A stretch of DNA of 64,000 nt from the sequence record NC_004629.1. One strand, written 5' to 3'. Numbering within the stretch: the stretch's first letter is position 1; each line of letters opens with the position of its first letter. Both the position numbers and the translations under genes were made by a program. Positions 2,719 through 63,100 of this stretch are shown one piece after another. The notes below the pieces were generated by a model that saw nothing but the letters and a program-made list of their open reading frames with translations, had not been told where the DNA came from and ran no database searches.

Positions 2719-3234
2719 ATGTTCGAAATTAAATTTTCTAAAAAAGAACAATTCCCTGGCCGTGGTCACTGCATCGAACTTTATGGTGATTATGTCACCG
2801 AGCGTGTATGGCATGCAGTGAAACAAATGGTTGAATGTAACATTACCAATCACGAGTTTTATAAGGCAAAAGAAGGTTTCTGTGTATTCTTCCAAGGTGG
2901 GCATGATAACCCTCATGGGAAATGGATCCTTCTGGAATTCTGGGTAGACGACATCGAGAAGACTCGTGAGTTCGTTCGTCTCTTGACCATCACTATTAAT
3001 CGAGTATTGACGGAGCGTTTTACTCAAATCTGCGTTAACCCTAATCAAATGGGTTATGCAGATGGGGCAGGTGCATATACTGTACTTGGCGAAATCCATA
3101 AAGAAACTGGATGTCGTGTTAATTGGGGTAGTCCGACTACACCCATTACCTTCTATCCAGAAAATAACTTGGAACATCGTAAAGTACTCGACTTGTGTGA
3201 AACCTTCGAACTCCCAGTAACTAAATGGGTATAA
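2719..3234 (+). CDS. early hypothetical protein
   Basis: 171-aa ORF with AAGGA SD after an early promoter. Confidence 0.8.
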   Translation: MFEIKFSKKEQFPGRGHCIELYGDYVTERVWHAVKQMVECNITNHEFYKAKEGFCVFFQGGHDNPHGKWILLEFWVDDIEKTREFVRLLTITINRVLTERFTQICVNPNQMGYADGAGAYTVLGEIHKETGCRVNWGSPTTPITFYPENNLEHRKVLDLCETFELPVTKWV

Positions 3235-44934: not shown

Positions 44935-44970
44935 GGTAACAACAGTAGTAATTACAAATAGGAATATACA

Positions 44971-45336
44971 ATGGCTAAAAATAATGTTGAAGACCCGCCA
45001 CTATATTTAGGTAATAACAAAGATCTTACCGTATACATGACTAGCAAAGAAATTGTAGTTAACTTTTTCAATGTAGAGCGTAGAGTTAAGATAGATCCTA
45101 ATGACCCCAATCCATTAGCAACTGCTACTAAACTCCATGAGGAATTAGTTAAGCTATTAGTCGCGCATCGATTTGGTAGTGTAGTTAAAGTAAATGAAAC
45201 ATCTGCTTCAGCACATTCACCATTTGTTGCTAAATTTGACACAACTGATAATAATAAAGTTGATCCAGTTAGTAAACTATACGAACTGTACCATTCTCTT
45301 TTTGGAACAGTTCGTAAATATATGCAAAGTAAATGA
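44971..45336 (+). CDS. hypothetical protein (gp53-like)
   Basis: 121-aa ORF with AGGA SD. Confidence 0.75.
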   Translation: MAKNNVEDPPLYLGNNKDLTVYMTSKEIVVNFFNVERRVKIDPNDPNPLATATKLHEELVKLLVAHRFGSVVKVNETSASAHSPFVAKFDTTDNNKVDPVSKLYELYHSLFGTVRKYMQSK

Positions 45337-45551
45337 TAACTGCATTTTATAAAAATACTGATAGTTATTATTTAATACAGGACTGACGTAAATTAGTTTC
45401 TGGATTCAAACTTTATACCCATAAACTCAAAAAAGAAGATATGGAAATTGTAAAATGAAAAATAAATAATACTCAGATTGTAATAATATGTAGTGAACAT
45501 AGTGTTCGTTACGATCTGCTGATAGCAGATTATAGCGTCTATGTTGTAATG

Positions 45552-45575
45552 AAAAAAATTTGAGATTTATATTAC
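45552..45575 (+). promoter_or_regulatory. early promoter of chimallin
   Basis: aaaaaaatttgagattTATATTAC (core 45568-45575). Confidence 0.85.
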
Positions 45576-45647
45576 TAAATTGAATCTAGTATACTAAGTA
45601 CTTAGGTTCTTCTTGATCAAGAAACCATAATCGTAAAGGTATTTAAA

Positions 45648-47528
45648 ATGGCTGTTAACGAAAACGAAATCGGCACCGTTCAAACTCAAGCTACTGCTCC
45701 TGCTCCGCAACCCACTGCACAGCGTCAAGCTCAACGTCCTACTGGCGCGCCTGGGTCTACTACTGGCATTAACCATCTAATGCGTCGCTCTGGTCGACTA
45801 GATGGCTCTGATGCTCGTTCAGCAGATGCCCTACAAGTATTCACTAAAGTAAAAGAAGAAGCAATCCGCCATCAGGACCTACCTGATGACTTCGATATCC
45901 ATCGTTTCGATCGTGATGCGCAACAAGTTGGTATGGCTGGTCTACTCATTGTTAAACTAGCTAAAGATATCAATGGTTCCATGAAGGCATTCGTTCGTAC
46001 TCTAGTACTCGATAACCTACCTGGTACTCGCATCCGTCCCCGTACCCACAAAATCAACAATGGTCTAACCGACGACATCATTGAAGAGAAGGTACTACCG
46101 CGTGATGTATTCACTGCTCAATACTGGAGCAAGATCGGCGAGTTCCTACGGAACCGTTACAACATCCCTGGTCTAGAAGTACTATCTGCCGGTCCCCGTG
46201 CAGTGTATGCTGACTTCGACTTCAAAGATGAACTAGCTGTTAAGAACCTACTAGTTGAATCTGTTAACATCTGTGAAGATGCTATTGCACGTCGTAACAA
46301 TGAGACTCCGTTCTCTATTGCGACCCACATCAAAGCAGAAAACGAACAGCTTACCTGCAACCTAGACTACAATGGTATTCCGGTTAAAGATAGCTGTGGT
46401 AATCCGATCCGTTCTGACATGGTCATCTCCACTAGCCGTGGTAAGAAAACCAACGTACCTGAGAACGAGTTCTATGATACCGATAGCCAGCTAAACCAAG
46501 TTAGTCTATTCGTAGATCTACATTGGACTCCGACCACTGGCCAGCAACAAGGTATGTTTGGCGTAACTCTACCTGGTGCAGCTCTACCTCCGCAGTTCAC
46601 TCCTTACATCGTTATCACTGACGTTCGTAAGGCATCCTGGATCCAAGCATGGACTCTAGAAATGTGGCTGTTCGCACTCGGTAATGCGTATCGTGCAACT
46701 GCATCCCAGGCATGGGCTCGTACCCTAATGCCGAAGATCGCTACTAGCAAGATGCGTGATATTGGTGCACTTGGTTATTACTCAGAGCTAGGTAAAGCGA
46801 TTGAAACTCGCACCGAAGCATTCATGGCAGACGACAGCAACTTCGTAATGCTAATGAACAAGATGGTTAACCAGAACCCTGCATTCCAGATCGATATCGA
46901 TCCAATGGGCGACAACTCAGCTATTGAGCAAGTCATCCTAGATGCAGCTGGTGGCGTAAACCAAGCTCGTGCAGTTAGCCTGATCTTCCAAGCTCTAACT
47001 AACCTATACGGCACTGATTTCCGTCAGTTCTATAACCTAGCTGAAGCTGGTCCGATTATCTTTGACAACCATCATGAAGTAGACCTCGGTCACTACACTG
47101 ATGAGCATGGCGAACTAAGCGACCGTCGTGATCTTGACGTTCTAGGTGCCATGAACATGTCTGAAGGTAATGACCAAGAGTGGAAGACCTGGTATGCTAC
47201 TCAGGTAGGTAATGACCACATTGTGCGTCGTATGAATAACAGTAAAGGCTTCGACAAGATGTACCTAGGTAACGTTACCTATACTGGTCGTGCTCGTCGT
47301 CTAACCTTTAACCCGAAATTCATCACCGCAATGGATGCCGCAGCAGCAGCCGCTGGTGTAACTGTAACCATGGAAAACCTAATTACCAACTTCGGTCAAC
47401 AGCGCTTCGCTGGTTACACCGGTATGGGTAACATGGCTGTTTCTGGTAGTGCACAAGTTGGCATGGCTGGCAGCATGGGTCAAACTTACGGCGCTCCTTC
47501 CTATAATGCACCGGGTACCTGGTACTAA
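45648..47528 (+). CDS. chmA: chimallin, major phage nuclear shell protein (gp54)
   Basis: 626 aa; Q/A/P-rich N-arm and G/M-rich C-tail; directly upstream of the nvRNAP beta' gene; strong high-expression codon bias. Confidence 0.9.
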
Positions 47529-47529
47529 T

Positions 47530-47897
47530 AGGAAATACCTCGGTAGATAGGGATGTTAAATAAGTAACATCCCGATTCTAATACTGCGACCCTGGTTCAC
47601 TTCGGTGATAACGGTTAGGAGTAGGTTCCGTGAAGTAATCGACTAGTGGACTTAGTCTAGGTCGACCTATCACTACACGAGGATGATAGATCACTTAACC
47701 GAAAGGAGTTACTCAAAAGGTAACGTGTGATCAAAAACTACAATGGATGGTAAATGAGACTAGTGCCGGTATGCTACAAAGAAGAGCGGAGGTTAAGCTT
47801 TGTAGATGACGCTAGGCTCGGGCCAGGCTCCGTTGGTGGTCCATTGTAAAAACTGATATAGCGGCTCCTTCGGGGGCCGCTTATATCTCCTTTTTTT
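47530..47897 (+). ncRNA. candidate large structured RNA or 3' UTR domain ending in a strong terminator
   Basis: ~360-nt GC-richer gap with nested long helices, cUUCGg and GAAA tetraloops and A-rich linkers; terminator gatatagcggctcc-TTCG-ggggccgcttatatc plus T7. Confidence 0.7.
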
Positions 47898-47922
47898 GTT
47901 AATCGATAAACAGGAGTTTGGT

Positions 47923-49167
47923 ATGGGTCTTTATGCCAAAGTTGTTGATCATAATGAAGTTCATGATCAATTTACGGGTAAACGAATTTATGCCAATGAT
48001 TACAATACGAGTAACTCAGATGAGAAAGAAGAATTTGATAGGCATTTCTATTCTCATTTCCAAGATTCAGAAGCAATTGAAAGTAGTGTAAGCTGTGATT
48101 GTCGAGCAATCGAAGACGCACATAAACTCGGAGTAATCTGTGATATTTGTAATACTCCAGTTGTCAATACTTCTAGCCGCCCTATCGAACCATCAATGTG
48201 GGTTCGTACACCAAAACACGTACGTAGCCTAATTAACCCACGTTTAATCATTATGCTAACCGGATATCTAGTAACTAAAGAATTCGATTTCTTAGCATAT
48301 CTAACTGATACTTCTTATCGATACGATGTAGAATCTATTGGTTCTAAAGAAACACGCAGGAAAGTAGATAGGCTACTGCATCGAGGATTTGAAAGAGGAT
48401 TAAATCACTTCATTGATAATTTCAATGAGATCTTCCAATTCCTACTAGATGCAAATATTATCTCTAATAATAAATCCGAATTCGCTCAATTCGTTGCTCA
48501 GAATAAAGATAAGTTATTCCCTAAATATTTACCAGTTCCTTCTAAACTCTGTTTCGTAGCAGAATCAACCACATCTGGTACTTACTTAGATAAACCAATT
48601 GAAGCAGCAATTGATGCTACCTTAACCTTCGCTAGTATTGATGCATCATCTGTACCACTTAGTCCAATTAAAGCTCAGAATAGGACTATGCGAGGACTAA
48701 GACTATATGGCCAGTTCTACGAGATCTACGCAAAATCACGAATTGCTCAAAAGCCTGGTCTTGCTCGGCGTCACATGTTTGGTGCTCGTCTCAACGCTAC
48801 GGCACGTGCAGTAATCACTTCTATTAGTGACCCGCATGATTATGATGAATTACATATTCCGTGGGGAGTAGGTTGTCAATTATTAAAGTATCATCTAACT
48901 AACAAGCTAAAAGCTAAGTTTAACATGACAACTCGTGAAGCATTCTCATTTGTATATGAGAATGTACTTCAATATAACCAAATCATCGCAGATCTATTTA
49001 AAGAGTTAATTGCAGAAGCAGCCCCTTATAAAGGAATGGGTTGTACTTTTCACCGAAATCCAACGCTTCAACGTGGATCTACGCAGCAGTTCTTTATTAC
49101 TAAAGTAAAAGATGACATTAATGATAATTCTATCAGCATGTCAGTTTTATGCCTTAAAGCGCCTAAT
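47923..49167 (+). CDS. non-virion RNA polymerase beta' N-terminal subunit, exon 1 (gp55)
   Basis: AGGAG SD; Zn finger CDC...CDIC; HRNPTLQ; ends KAPN, the N of NADFDGD. Confidence 0.9.
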
Positions 49168-50539
49168 GGACAATTGAATAACTAAATAAGGGTAAAAACA
49201 ATGGAACAAAACGGAGTAGTGTCCGTCTTTGATCCGGCTTCATTTAAAATTGAATGGCGGGATATTCCTGGATACTCAGCATATGAAGCTAGTAACTTAG
49301 GAACAATTCGTCATAAGCGGTTAAATAGAATATGTAATTTCTTCCTTACTAAAACATCGATTGGGACATATCTCAATATTGGTGCAAAAAATGATGAAAA
49401 AACATCTAAGAGTAAGGGTGTTCATATATTAATCTGTTTAGCTTTCCATGGTCCATCACCTGGACCAAATTATGAAGTCAATCATAAAGACGGCAACAAA
49501 CATAATAATTTACCATCTAATTTGGAGTGGATGACTCGTGGTGAAAACATTGAGCATGCTTACAAAAATGGATTAAGAAAAGAAAATAGACGGGTAATTG
49601 CAACTGACGTTACCACTGGTGAAAAGACTACTTATTACTCGATGAGTGAACTTGCTCGGGCATTAGGAGTTAATAAAAATACGGTTTGGGTTATTATACG
49701 TGATCATAAGACTAAGCCGTATAGAAATAGATTCACATTTGAATTTATTACCGGTGAGACTAAGATTGCTGATCGAGATAGTACCAAGACAGTTTATGTT
49801 TTAGACTATAAGACTAAGACATTACATGTGTTTCATAACTTAGCTGAAATGGAACTTGCACTGGGTACTAAACGTAATAAAGCCTATTACCATCTAGTTA
49901 GAGGTAGTAAGGAAATCATGGATGGTTTGGTATTCTCATATACCGCTAATCCTGAAGATTTCCCTAAATACACTCAAAAAGAAATTGAAGCCTCATTTGG
50001 AAAACCTAGTAATGGAAAAGGTACTCCAATTGAAGTAACTGACACCATCTTGAACACTACCAAAGTGTATCCGAGTATTCCACACTTTGCAAGAGATGTC
50101 GGTATTAAGCATCCGAATACTGTTCGAAGAGCAATCTTTGAAAAGAATGGGGTGCTTGATAAATACCTTATTAAGTTAATCAAATCTAGTTCCCCCAATG
50201 AGTAATCGTTGGGTTGAGTTCTCTCTAATTGCTGGGATATCCTGTTAAACTAATCTACCACTGCGAGTCGAAAGACAAAGCCAAGGTTTGAAAAAGATTA
50301 GGTAGGGCCAATCAGCAGCCAAGCTCCGTAACATTCCATTTAGGAATAGGAGAAGGTTCAACGACTATTACGGTATCAGGTGCACCGGTCCTAGAAATAG
50401 GATGTAGGGTCAAGTGACTCGAAATGGGAGACACCCCACTCCGAAAGGAAGGGTGAAGATATAGTCTGGTCTTCTAGCGAGAGCTAGAGCTGCACGTAAT
50501 GGTGCGGGTATCAATTAACGACTGATACTGAACAATACG
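49168..50539 (+). mobile_element. group I intron (IA-like) interrupting the RNAP catalytic motif NADFDGD
   Basis: exon ends in U and intron ends in G; P aattgctgggata at 50227, Q aatcagcagcc at 50310, R gttcaacgactat at 50356, S aagatatagtct at 50456; P3 50220-50225/50426-50431; splicing restores the frame. Confidence 0.92.
49201..50205 (+). CDS. intron-encoded HNH homing endonuclease (NUMOD4-HNH-NUMOD1 type, gp56)
   Basis: WRDIPGYSAYEASNLG (NUMOD4); VNHKDGNKHNNLPSNLEW...N.EH (HNH); three HTH-like repeats such as YSMSELARALG. Confidence 0.92.
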   Translation: MEQNGVVSVFDPASFKIEWRDIPGYSAYEASNLGTIRHKRLNRICNFFLTKTSIGTYLNIGAKNDEKTSKSKGVHILICLAFHGPSPGPNYEVNHKDGNKHNNLPSNLEWMTRGENIEHAYKNGLRKENRRVIATDVTTGEKTTYYSMSELARALGVNKNTVWVIIRDHKTKPYRNRFTFEFITGETKIADRDSTKTVYVLDYKTKTLHVFHNLAEMELALGTKRNKAYYHLVRGSKEIMDGLVFSYTANPEDFPKYTQKEIEASFGKPSNGKGTPIEVTDTILNTTKVYPSIPHFARDVGIKHPNTVRRAIFEKNGVLDKYLIKLIKSSSPNE

Positions 50540-50761
50540 GCTGATTTTGACGGCGATCAATTGAATCTTACGTTAATGCCTGATGTGTATCTAACTAAAG
50601 CAACTGAACGCATTGCACCACACACGTGGGTTCTATCTATTGATGAACCACATGAAATCTCAGGTAACCTTGAATTACAGGGTCCTGTTGTAGAAACAAT
50701 TATTAACTGGGCACATGAGAAGTATTTACCGCCATTAGAAGAATGGCTAAAAGCAAAATAA
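50540..50761 (+). CDS. nvRNAP beta' N-terminal subunit, exon 2 (gp56.1)
   Basis: begins gct gat ttt gac ggc gat = ADFDGD; spliced product is about 488 aa. Confidence 0.9.
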   Translation, partial: ADFDGDQLNLTLMPDVYLTKATERIAPHTWVLSIDEPHEISGNLELQGPVVETIINWAHEKYLPPLEEWLKAK

Positions 50762-50763
50762 AT

Positions 50764-50796
50764 TAATAGGGGAGTCTAACTCCCCTATTATTTCTT
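50764..50796 (+). terminator. intrinsic terminator
   Basis: taataggggag-TCTAA-ctcccctatta followed by TTTCTTT. Confidence 0.85.
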
Positions 50797-50809
50797 TGAG
50801 GCTGGTAGC

Positions 50810-51193
50810 ATGCATGATTTAGTCATCTATTGGAAAGCTCATGATGGTTACTACATACAAGATGAACATGGCGAACATCCTGTAACTTTCCAATTCGCAG
50901 AAATTAATTGGAATTTCACCGGAGCTTATGAATACGGTGGTTCTGAATTAATTGATGATCACTTAAGGTTTGGTATAGATTTCAAAGTACGTGATATTGA
51001 ATGGCAAATTAGGTTTGATTTAAACGGTAAATTTACTCTGTACAATATGTCAAATAATGATCGGGATGATACCTTTGTAATTCCAGCTACTTCAAAATTT
51101 GCCCAATTCTTTAAAAAGACAGGCAAACATGTAGTTACTAATGAAGTTATCACTATCCCAATTAATTGCTCTTTTGATAAGCAAATTTATTAA
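50810..51193 (+). CDS. hypothetical protein
   Basis: 127-aa ORF with GAGG SD. Confidence 0.75.
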   Translation: MHDLVIYWKAHDGYYIQDEHGEHPVTFQFAEINWNFTGAYEYGGSELIDDHLRFGIDFKVRDIEWQIRFDLNGKFTLYNMSNNDRDDTFVIPATSKFAQFFKKTGKHVVTNEVITIPINCSFDKQIY

Positions 51194-62628: not shown

Positions 62629-62639
62629 TACGGCATAAA

Positions 62640-62663
62640 CCAGGGGGCCTAAGGGTCCCCTGG
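62640..62663. terminator. bidirectional terminator
   Basis: ccagggg...cccctgg between convergent genes. Confidence 0.7.
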
Positions 62664-62669
62664 CTTGCT

Positions 62670-63032
62670 TTAAAACTTTTTAGTTTGATATAGGCTAACG
62701 AGGTGCTGAATCATGTCGTTATTCGGTATGATTAAATAGCTGGTGTAATCATTAGCTGAAGGATCCCTTAGAACTTTACCAAAATCATAAGGGCTAACTA
62801 AACCATTAACACGCATTTGAATCCACCACATATCGGGATTGACACGGCGTTCTGCCATGTATCCATAAAAGTTTCCTTCGAACTGGTAATACAATTCAGG
62901 TGGAATCTGAATACGTGTGGATCTGACATTACGTAAGATATTCAAATGAGTCTCAATAATTAATCTGAACCCTGGTTCATAATAAACAGATTCACCTGAA
63001 TCTGGCTGATTAGCTAACAGTGTGAATGCCAT
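62670..63032 (-). CDS. putative baseplate wedge protein (T4 gp53-like)
   Basis: NPDMWWIQMRVNGLVSPYDF resembles the gp53 WxIxxxNxxxDP signature; late TATG 36 nt upstream. Confidence 0.55.
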   Translation of the reverse strand: MAFTLLANQPDSGESVYYEPGFRLIIETHLNILRNVRSTRIQIPPELYYQFEGNFYGYMAERRVNPDMWWIQMRVNGLVSPYDFGKVLRDPSANDYTSYLIIPNNDMIQHLVSLYQTKKF

Positions 63033-63044
63033 AATAAATTCCAA

Positions 63045-63075
63045 TAAATTTTATTTAAGATCTATATCATAGTTT
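63045..63075. promoter_or_regulatory. overlapping divergent promoter: early TATATCAT (+) and late TATG (-)
   Basis: agatctatatcatagttt at 63058-63075. Confidence 0.65.
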
Positions 63076-63100
63076 TACAATTACCCAAAAGGAGGTAGTG

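Follow-up and report, generated by a model that had tools for sequence, protein, structure and literature searches.

A conserved three-domain structured RNA in the 3′ untranslated region of the chimallin gene of phage phiKZ

Introduction

Structured RNAs adjoining genes take several known forms in bacteria and phages. REP elements and the lambda sib site are structured blocks 3′ of a cistron near a partly read-through terminator, where terminated and read-through transcripts can differ in fate, and in E. coli operons REP elements act as stabilizers of the cistron they follow. Among large, ornate noncoding RNAs (ncRNAs), GOLLD and ROOL often adjoin tRNA genes. Here we describe a structured RNA downstream of chmA, which encodes chimallin, the shell protein of the phage nucleus, and is the best-studied gene of Pseudomonas phage phiKZ, the model nucleus-forming phage. 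The window analyzed is the 64,000-nt stretch of bases 1–64000 of the phiKZ genome (AF399011 / NC_004629; numbering identical), in which a 394-nt gap (47529–47922) separates chmA from gp55, a gene for a subunit of the non-virion RNA polymerase (nvRNAP). Bases 47538–47848 of this gap are a plus-strand RNA of ~310 nt with three independently closed domains.

An earlier note on this DNA, made from the sequence alone, had described the gap as lacking a credible open reading frame (ORF) and as far more structured than a terminator needs. Both statements hold, as the ORFs overlapping the element are all ≤38 aa and the structure is that of a real multi-domain RNA. The element is not described in any paper that we found, including the phiKZ dRNA-seq, ONT-cappable-seq, Grad-seq, ASO and TnSeq papers (Ceyssens 2014 not covered).

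Results

Compensatory changes define the fold and its strand

The alignment comprised 10 distinct sequences, from the Phikzvirus phages phiKZ, SL2, W10-2, T2P, FBPa36 and PA7 and the Pawinskivirus phages PA1C, HPP-Temi, PS119XW and HHBS36_1. RNAalifold predicted 108 pairs in 16 helices, with standard pairs in 99.5% of the 1079 cells, and the minimum free energy fold gave the same architecture. Double changes that preserve pairing were present in eight pairs, one in each of eight helices; when the 3′ partners were slid by 1–3 columns, their number was 0–2 and pairing fell to 33–42%. A covariance model of domain 1 (R1) additionally identified a homolog in PhiPA3 (L002:2500–2773, E = 6.6e-10), and with this sequence included, nine of the 47 domain 1 pairs showed double changes, against at most one in the slid controls. 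G–U or U–G pairs occupied 136 cells and A–C a single one, and the UUCG and GAAA loops lie on the plus strand, which together indicate that the folded molecule is plus-strand RNA. Variation was seen in 31 of 216 paired columns and in 47 of 141 unpaired columns.

Folding energy, which the earlier note had proposed to compare with shuffled sequence alongside a search for covariation among relatives, gave a modest signal. The z-score was −3.65 with the terminator and −2.72 without it (47538–47848), and none of 100 shuffles was equally stable. The minus strand scored similarly (z = −4.1); thermodynamics thus proves neither function nor strand, and covariation is the stronger evidence. The sequences represent only ~3 lineages, so that shuffle statistics overstate significance, and they are too few for an R-scape-type test.

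Architecture of the phiKZ element

The coordinates of the element and its flanking genes are collected in Table 1. All helices listed in the earlier note are present, among them GGGATGTTA/TAACATCCC (47550–58/47565–73), the UCAC-UUCG-GUGA hairpin (47597–47608), GATCAC/GTGATC (47689–94/47727–32), which holds CC-GAAA-GG and GTTAC/GTAAC, and TACAATGGAT/GTCCATTGTA (47739–48/47839–48), which holds CTACAAAG/CTTTGTAG. Of the long irregular helix that it proposed, the TCGAC/GTCGA portion stands, but the cgtg/cacg closure has to give way to GUGAAG/CU-AUCAC (47630–35/47667–73), because Pawinskivirus GCGA/UCGC compensates the latter pairing and breaks the former. Two AAAAAC linkers, likewise noted, are present in phiKZ, where the inter-domain linkers are short and A-rich, but they are not kept between genera.

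Table 1 Features of the chmA–gp55 region of phiKZ
Feature	Coordinates	Strand	Basis
chmA (PHIKZ054, chimallin)	45648–47528	+	Pfam PF25677 full-length match, E = 0; 100% identical to phiKZ AF399011, same coordinates
Domain 1: three hairpins within helix CCUCG/CGAGG (47538–42/47678–82)	47538–47682	+	RNAalifold helices 1–7
Hairpin 1a: UAGA/UCUA and GGGAUGUUA/UAACAUCCC	47544–47580	+	Covariation
Hairpin 1b: outer helix, internal loop, UCAC-UUCG-GUGA tip (47597–47608)	47582–47623	+	RNAalifold helices 4–5
Hairpin 1c: GUGAAG/CU-AUCAC base, UCGACU/GGUCGA, UGGAC/GUCUA	47630–47673	+	Covariation
Domain 2: 44-nt three-way junction (GAUCAC/GUGAUC, CC-GAAA-GG, GUUACU/GGUAAC)	47689–47732	+	RNAalifold, covariation
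Domain 3: closing helix 47739–48/47839–48, long arm, side hairpin 47822–26/47833–37	47739–47848	+	RNAalifold, covariation
Intrinsic terminator T025: stem 47855–68/47873–87, UUCG loop, U7 47891–97	47855–47897	+	Helix 16; published 3′ end 47888
gp55 (PHIKZ055), nvRNAP subunit gene, exon 1	47923–49185	+	RefSeq annotation; start ATG 47923

In the helix closing domain 1, a U–A pair is replaced by C–G in Pawinskivirus. Hairpin 1a shows an A–U to U–A exchange at 47545/47579, its pair 47557/47566 is U–A, C–G or A–U across three genera, and its G–U wobbles occur on the plus strand only. At the position of hairpin 1b, PhiPA3 appears, by our own reading, to form a similarly shaped hairpin of other sequence with a GAAA loop. 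Hairpin 1c carries double changes at 47631/47672 (U–A to C–G) and, in W10-2, at 47642/47662 (A–U to G–C); PhiPA3 keeps its base and has a 157-nt insertion within.

Domain 2 is the best-conserved part over the three genera. Its closing helix reads AACCAC/GUGGUU in PhiPA3, that is, two double changes relative to GAUCAC/GUGAUC in phiKZ, and HPP-Temi has GUUGC/GCAAC. The 2-bp CC-GAAA-GG stem is invariant and therefore allows no covariation test. Domain 3 has a two-step arm (47756–65/47810–19 and 47774–81/47798–805, tip 47785–94), with double changes at 47742/47845 and 47758/47817. Domains 2 and 3 together admit two mutually exclusive folds, each ~99% paired in nine sequences, because their 3′ partners are near-repeats (GUGAUC and GUGGUC; GUCCAUUG and CUCCGUUG). 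Fold A of domain 2 is backed by PhiPA3, and domains 2–3 (47689–47848) may switch between two conformations.

A spacer of 6 nt separates the end of domain 3 (47848) from the terminator stem, which begins at 47855. This GC-rich, UUCG-capped hairpin with its seven U residues, called a strong terminator in the earlier note, is the experimentally mapped T025. Its region is 97% identical even in PhiPA3; a simple terminator scan misses it, with 3 nt lying between stem and U run.

The element is the 3′ untranslated region of chmA mRNAs

Published ONT-cappable-seq data place four start sites upstream of chmA, namely P025 (44937, early), P026 (45377, middle), P027 (45490, middle) and P028 (45583, early); the next start site is at 49168, with none mapped between (Putzeys et al., bioRxiv 10.1101/2023.10.13.562163, Tables S4/S5). 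In the same data set, transcription units TU038, 040, 043 and 045 stop at the intrinsic terminator T025, with a 3′ end at 47888, and TU041 and TU046 run from chmA promoters to 52650, reading through it. Co-transcription of chmA with the downstream nvRNAP cistron was also described by Gerovac et al. (PMC12571901). With the interval from 45583 to 49168 free of start sites and T025 as the end of the chmA transcripts, the element is the 3′ untranslated region (3′ UTR) of chmA mRNAs from two early and two middle promoters (44937–45583), not a separate gene. Of the two options in the earlier note, a 3′ domain of chimallin mRNA thus fits the published transcript maps, and an independently transcribed ncRNA, having no start site of its own, does not. 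Transcription enters gp55, an essential nvRNAP gene, by one mapped route only, the read-through of T025 by a fraction of transcripts. The chmA stop codon itself is TAA (47526–28), followed by TAG.

The published ONT-cappable-seq data also contain a non-intrinsic 3′ end, T024, at 45844, ~200 nt inside the chmA coding sequence, at which short transcripts from each of the four chmA promoters end (TU037, 039, 042 and 044).

Distribution among phages

The element region was found by blastn in jumbo phages of P. aeruginosa only. The matches comprise ~49 Phikzvirus records at 94.7–100% identity and seven Pawinskivirus-like records at 84–85% over 362 nt; phiHQ matches from domain 2 onward only, and PhiPA3 in two short pieces. 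In a scan of IMG/VR with a domain 2 motif, one PA7-like phage alone was recovered, a chimallin protein search of IMG/VR returned the same contig only, and the motif gave nothing in JGI metagenomes or GTDB genomes. A metagenome scan with a hairpin 1a motif returned two matches, both chance occurrences inside coding sequence, apparently in genes for ABC-transporter ATPases. The covariance models (domain 1; domains 2+3) detected no second copy in the 64-kb window and no homolog in the loci of 201phi2-1, Psa21, Phabio, Noxifer, Viktualia, D6 and RP13, the domain 2+3 model also with filters off. The latter model, which was built on an RNAalifold structure differing from the full-length consensus, did not significantly recover domains 2–3 of PhiPA3, and homology of PhiPA3 domain 3 is hence not shown. 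On these searches, the element appears to be confined to Phikzvirus, Pawinskivirus and, in diverged form, PhiPA3.

D6, Noxifer, Psa21, phiHQ, 201phi2-1 and Phabio all form a phage nucleus. The order of chmA and RNA polymerase (RNAP) gene is the same in D6, Noxifer, Psa21, 201phi2-1, Phabio and Viktualia, which differ from phiKZ in the gap. In D6 and Noxifer, it measures 84–87 nt and is essentially a terminator. Psa21 has a 435-nt gap with an unrelated structured RNA (z = −3.6). Small ORFs occupy the gap in 201phi2-1, Phabio and Viktualia. The chmA 3′ regions of 201phi2-1 (L004 4759–4983) and Phabio (L006 4753–5036) are strongly structured (z = −6.3 and −5.4, respectively) and share a GAAA-capped hairpin, UGGGAUCGAAAGGUCCCA, directly after the stop codon, with a sequence unrelated to the phiKZ element. 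In other lineages, the slot of the element would thus hold structured RNAs unrelated to it or be empty. Deep branching in the ChmA and RNAP trees is unresolved, and a host-linked distribution is not cleanly separable from phylogeny.

As a side observation, gp106 of 201phi2-1 (L004 4984–5547, 188 aa), which lies between chmA and the RNAP gene, matches the Pfam family of the PhiKZ major capsid protein below threshold (22.8 bits; cut-off 27).

Probable exchange between genera and replacement of domains

Between phiKZ and PA1C, identity is 56.8% in chmA and 63.6% in gp55 and 83.3% in the gap. In 60-nt windows, it is 79–89% over 47560–47859, 57% and 78% at the gap edges, and 41–70% outside. Within Phikzvirus the gap is less conserved than its flanks in four of five phages (94.7–96.4% versus 97.5–98.6%), the remaining one being FBPa36 (98.0% versus 98.0–98.8%); this faster evolution indicates that the gap is not intrinsically hyper-conserved. 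PA1C and PhiPA3, whose proteins are closer, are 68% and 74% identical in the two genes, and this value drops to 61% in the gap. Domain 3 of SL2 is identical to that of PA1C at 102 of 106 positions, as compared with 95 of 106 for phiKZ. The similarity of the element across genera would therefore disagree with that of the flanking genes.

Single domains also seem to be swappable. In phiHQ, whose two flanking genes are both 99.8% identical to those of PA1C, domain 1 is exactly replaced by ~310 nt of unrelated sequence, with domains 2–3 and the terminator retained. The replacing sequence belongs to a second structured RNA, type B, which also fills the chmA 3′ UTR of Psa21 and is present in Ralstonia phage RP13 (phiHQ, L003 2194–2505; Psa21, L005 4756–5075; RP13, L020 about 2950–3097). 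The type B core reads ...CAAUUGCA...UAAAGGUCUGACG...UGACCUGCCAAAGUC...ACUUACGGUGAUGUAA...AAACCGUAU; it has no Rfam match, and searches of IMG/VR and GTDB genomes yielded no additional copies. In RP13 the core lies outside a chimallin context, 10 nt upstream of a tRNA-Leu gene, which suggests that such modules work autonomously. Of the sister phages Psa21 and D6, the former has the 350-nt type B RNA and the latter lacks it. The slot downstream of chmA is thus filled by type A (phiKZ, Pawinskivirus and PhiPA3), type B (Psa21 and phiHQ) or a third type (201phi2-1 and Phabio).

Being present, absent or swapped among close relatives, the element would be an accessory, modular RNA cassette and not a core part of chimallin expression. 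The inter-domain linkers are identical at only 15 of 35 positions between genera, whereas the domains reach 83–96%, which speaks against a transfer that is purely recent and argues that the domains are also under real purifying selection.

Searches for known RNA classes and genes

Rfam 15 was searched with 47529–47900 at E ≤ 10 and gave nothing for the element on the plus strand, in line with the earlier note, which could not assign it to a known RNA family; the only minus-strand matches lay at the terminator end and were weak (STnc130, 18 bits, cut-off 55; ceN89, 15.7 bits, cut-off 48). No match to the element was obtained at E ≤ 0.1 over the whole window or at E ≤ 1 over nine related loci. 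The whole-window search did recover a group I intron at 50168–50489, which indicates that the method works here. The element itself is not a group I intron: it has no RF00028 match in that search and interrupts no ORF, and the chmA stop codons of phiKZ, PA1C, phiHQ and PhiPA3 align at the same point. ARAGORN found no tRNA or tmRNA gene in window positions 45000–51000 or in the nine related loci, and the element bears no resemblance to a CRISPR repeat, ToxI repeat or tRNA.

A small protein gene was rejected on both strands. The ATG at 47754 is lost in eight of the 10 sequences and the substitutions are pair-compensating, and in Pawinskivirus a 2-nt indel shifts the frame of the minus-strand ORF. 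A dispersed repeat or miniature inverted-repeat transposable element was rejected as well, with one site per genome and no flanking direct repeats. Shine-Dalgarno-like motifs (AGGAG, AAGGAG, GGAGG) are, by our own reading, not kept in PhiPA3. Pairing of the element with the chmA 5′ UTR was no better than that of shuffled sequence, and its pairing score with the gp55 start region is confounded by sequence overlap.

GenBank lists hypothetical proteins over these RNAs at L015 (2174–2281 and 2427–2615) and L017 (2174–2281 and 2426–2614), and a minus-strand ORF over the type B RNA of Psa21 (L005 4841–5083). These calls on top of structured RNAs are probably spurious.

Neighboring features in the window

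The gp55 gene is interrupted by a group I intron (49186–50575), whose catalytic core matches Rfam RF00028 (50168–50489; 75.6 bits, E = 2e-17) and which carries the HNH/NUMOD endonuclease gp56 (ORF 49201–50205). The second exon is annotated as PHIKZ056.1 (50576–50761), and the split gene is written ‘orf55-56.1’ in the TnSeq preprint. PA1C, PhiPA3 and other relatives have an uninterrupted gp55 homolog of 476–490 aa. A second long noncoding gap, at 62629–63100 (472 nt), lies upstream of PHIKZ070.1 and the nvRNAP gene gp71. This gap has z = −3.2, opens with a strong GC hairpin, closes with a sequence resembling the early promoter P025 and is not homologous to the chmA element.

Discussion

We propose that the folded RNA is itself a functional product, which would bind a trans-acting factor as a decoy, sponge or ribonucleoprotein scaffold; we put the probability of this reading at slightly below 0.4. 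Carried on the chmA mRNA, among the earliest and most strongly transcribed phage mRNAs, the element RNA would be abundant within minutes of the onset of infection. A factor, most likely a P. aeruginosa protein and possibly a phage protein, would then be bound by the conserved loops and junctions, either on the mRNA or after release by processing, and the chmA 3′ end would incidentally gain protection. The unpaired columns are mostly invariant while the linkers and flanking genes diverge, which argues that the loops and junctions themselves are under selection. Such constraint points to tertiary contacts or a bound partner and would be more than an exonuclease roadblock needs.

Several points weigh against this proposal. 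Neither a partner nor a discrete processed form of the RNA has been reported; in the Grad-seq study, manual inspection led to the report of two other phiKZ ncRNAs, and the element is not among them. Type A occurs only 3′ of chmA, and three lineages keep a structured RNA there, which could equally fit a cis role for the chmA mRNA. Vertical descent of old date, under strong selection and without exchange, would be another reading of linkers that diverge next to domains that are conserved. A simple sponge for RsmA is unlikely, as GGA motifs are not enriched (eight observed versus 8.4 expected). In addition, the sample is small, with 10 distinct sequences from ~3 lineages.

A role in cis, as a stabilizer and insulator that sets the ChmA:gp55 ratio, is a possible, if doubtful, explanation, in which the folded block would shield the chmA cistron from 3′-to-5′ exonucleases and RNase E entry, on terminated and read-through transcripts, and ChmA would be produced in far larger amounts than the polymerase subunit. 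The position of the block speaks for it, since the gene whose stop codon and terminator enclose the block is very highly expressed and the next gene is required at a low level only, as do the structured yet unrelated chmA 3′ regions of 201phi2-1, Phabio and Psa21. However, a roadblock needs stems and not conserved loops and junctions, D6 and Noxifer do with a terminator alone, and the phiKZ protein Dip already inhibits the degradosome (PMC4980113). An attenuator or antiterminator is in our view unlikely; here the RNA would sense a factor or bind the phage polymerase and set T025 read-through, thereby tuning gp55 in the manner of a riboswitch, T-box or HK022 put. The dependence of gp55 on read-through in place of a promoter of its own, the 6-nt distance between domain 3 and the terminator stem, the two exclusive folds of domains 2–3, and a domain 2 loop complementary at nine of 10 positions to the 3′ foot of the terminator would all suit such a device. 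Yet the GC-rich terminator stem is left untouched by any alternative pairing, the domain 2 complementarity is at chance level and weakened in PhiPA3, the element is missing from relatives in which the order of genes is unchanged, and domain 1 can be replaced by unrelated RNA.

A selfish or decaying mobile RNA, such as an intron or ribozyme remnant kept by transfer without benefit to the phage, would fit the patchy distribution, the cross-genus exchange, the domain replacement and the presence in the neighboring gene of an active group I intron that carries an HNH endonuclease. That origin is nonetheless improbable, considering that the element matches no group I or other ribozyme model, interrupts no ORF and is single-copy without flanking repeats, and that its compensatory changes show ongoing selection for the fold. 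Roles specific to chimallin, which the earlier note had suggested in the form of localized shell-protein translation, a scaffold for nucleus assembly or a client of the RNA-binding protein ChmC, draw on the linkage to chmA in all carriers. They are very improbable: nucleus-forming relatives lack the element or have unrelated RNAs, which argues against a core role, and the covariance models find no homolog in those loci, the domain 2+3 model even with filters off. To a DNA-level element (an origin, recombination or packaging site) or chance structure we assign next to no weight; the minus strand does fold about as well by z-score, but the 136 G–U cells against one A–C cell, the UUCG and GAAA loops on the plus strand only and the compensatory changes speak against it.

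Extending the proposal of a trans-acting RNA, we speculate that the chmA 3′ UTR serves nucleus-forming phages as an ‘RNA accessory slot’ for interchangeable, highly expressed early cassettes of structured RNA. Each would be a decoy suited to its host and directed at an RNA-binding protein of that host or at a defense system that senses RNA. This extension is rather doubtful; if true, the chmA-slot cassettes would be an RNA counterpart of protein anti-defense islands. With its clear covariation, the element would be a new class among the large structured RNAs of phages, and the exchange and swapping of structured RNA modules between jumbo-phage genera at one fixed site would be a behavior so far seen for accessory protein genes. 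It lies directly before the terminator that all gp55 transcription passes, and engineering, knockdown or transposon insertion at the locus affects it; it is testable in PAO1 with the existing phiKZ genetics.

Compared with known systems, the element shares features with several. In the manner of riboswitches, T-boxes and HK022 put, a structured block immediately precedes an intrinsic terminator on which access to an essential gene, here gp55, depends; unlike in these systems, no antiterminator pairing that excludes the T025 stem was found, the element follows a complete ORF and not a promoter, and it is absent from close relatives that have this operon. With REP and sib it has in common a structured block 3′ of a cistron next to a partly read-through terminator. 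Theirs, however, are simple hairpins with little sequence constraint, whereas the loops and junctions of the element are conserved and its domains modular. RNA-based counter-defense, including RNA anti-CRISPRs, pseudo-ToxI (PMC3475682) and phage tRNAs, offers an analogy only, in early expression and in an accessory, host-linked character with swapping at a fixed hot spot, although the element is unlike a CRISPR repeat, a ToxI repeat or a tRNA.

Two further groups share features with the element. The ornate ncRNAs (GOLLD and ROOL in phages, OLE and raiA in bacteria) are similarly large, multi-domain and conserved by covariation, with patchy horizontal spread in phages, and the type B RNA of RP13 has a tRNA gene as its neighbor, a common setting for GOLLD and ROOL; the element is smaller, resides in an mRNA 3′ UTR, has no Rfam match and occurs in P. 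aeruginosa jumbo phages only. Like the phage 3′ UTR ncRNAs (the PHIKZ298 3′ UTR RNA of phiKZ and ncRNA1/2 of PAK_P3), and as expected of a 3′ UTR-derived small RNA, it has no promoter or start site of its own, shares the terminator of its parent mRNA and lies 3′ of a highly expressed gene. Those RNAs have one or two hairpins in 90–210 nt, in contrast to three closed domains in ~310–360 nt; no seed-like single strand is evident in the element. Overall, it represents a real and previously undescribed structured RNA family in a model phage, of the kind of phage 3′ UTR and orphan structured RNAs.

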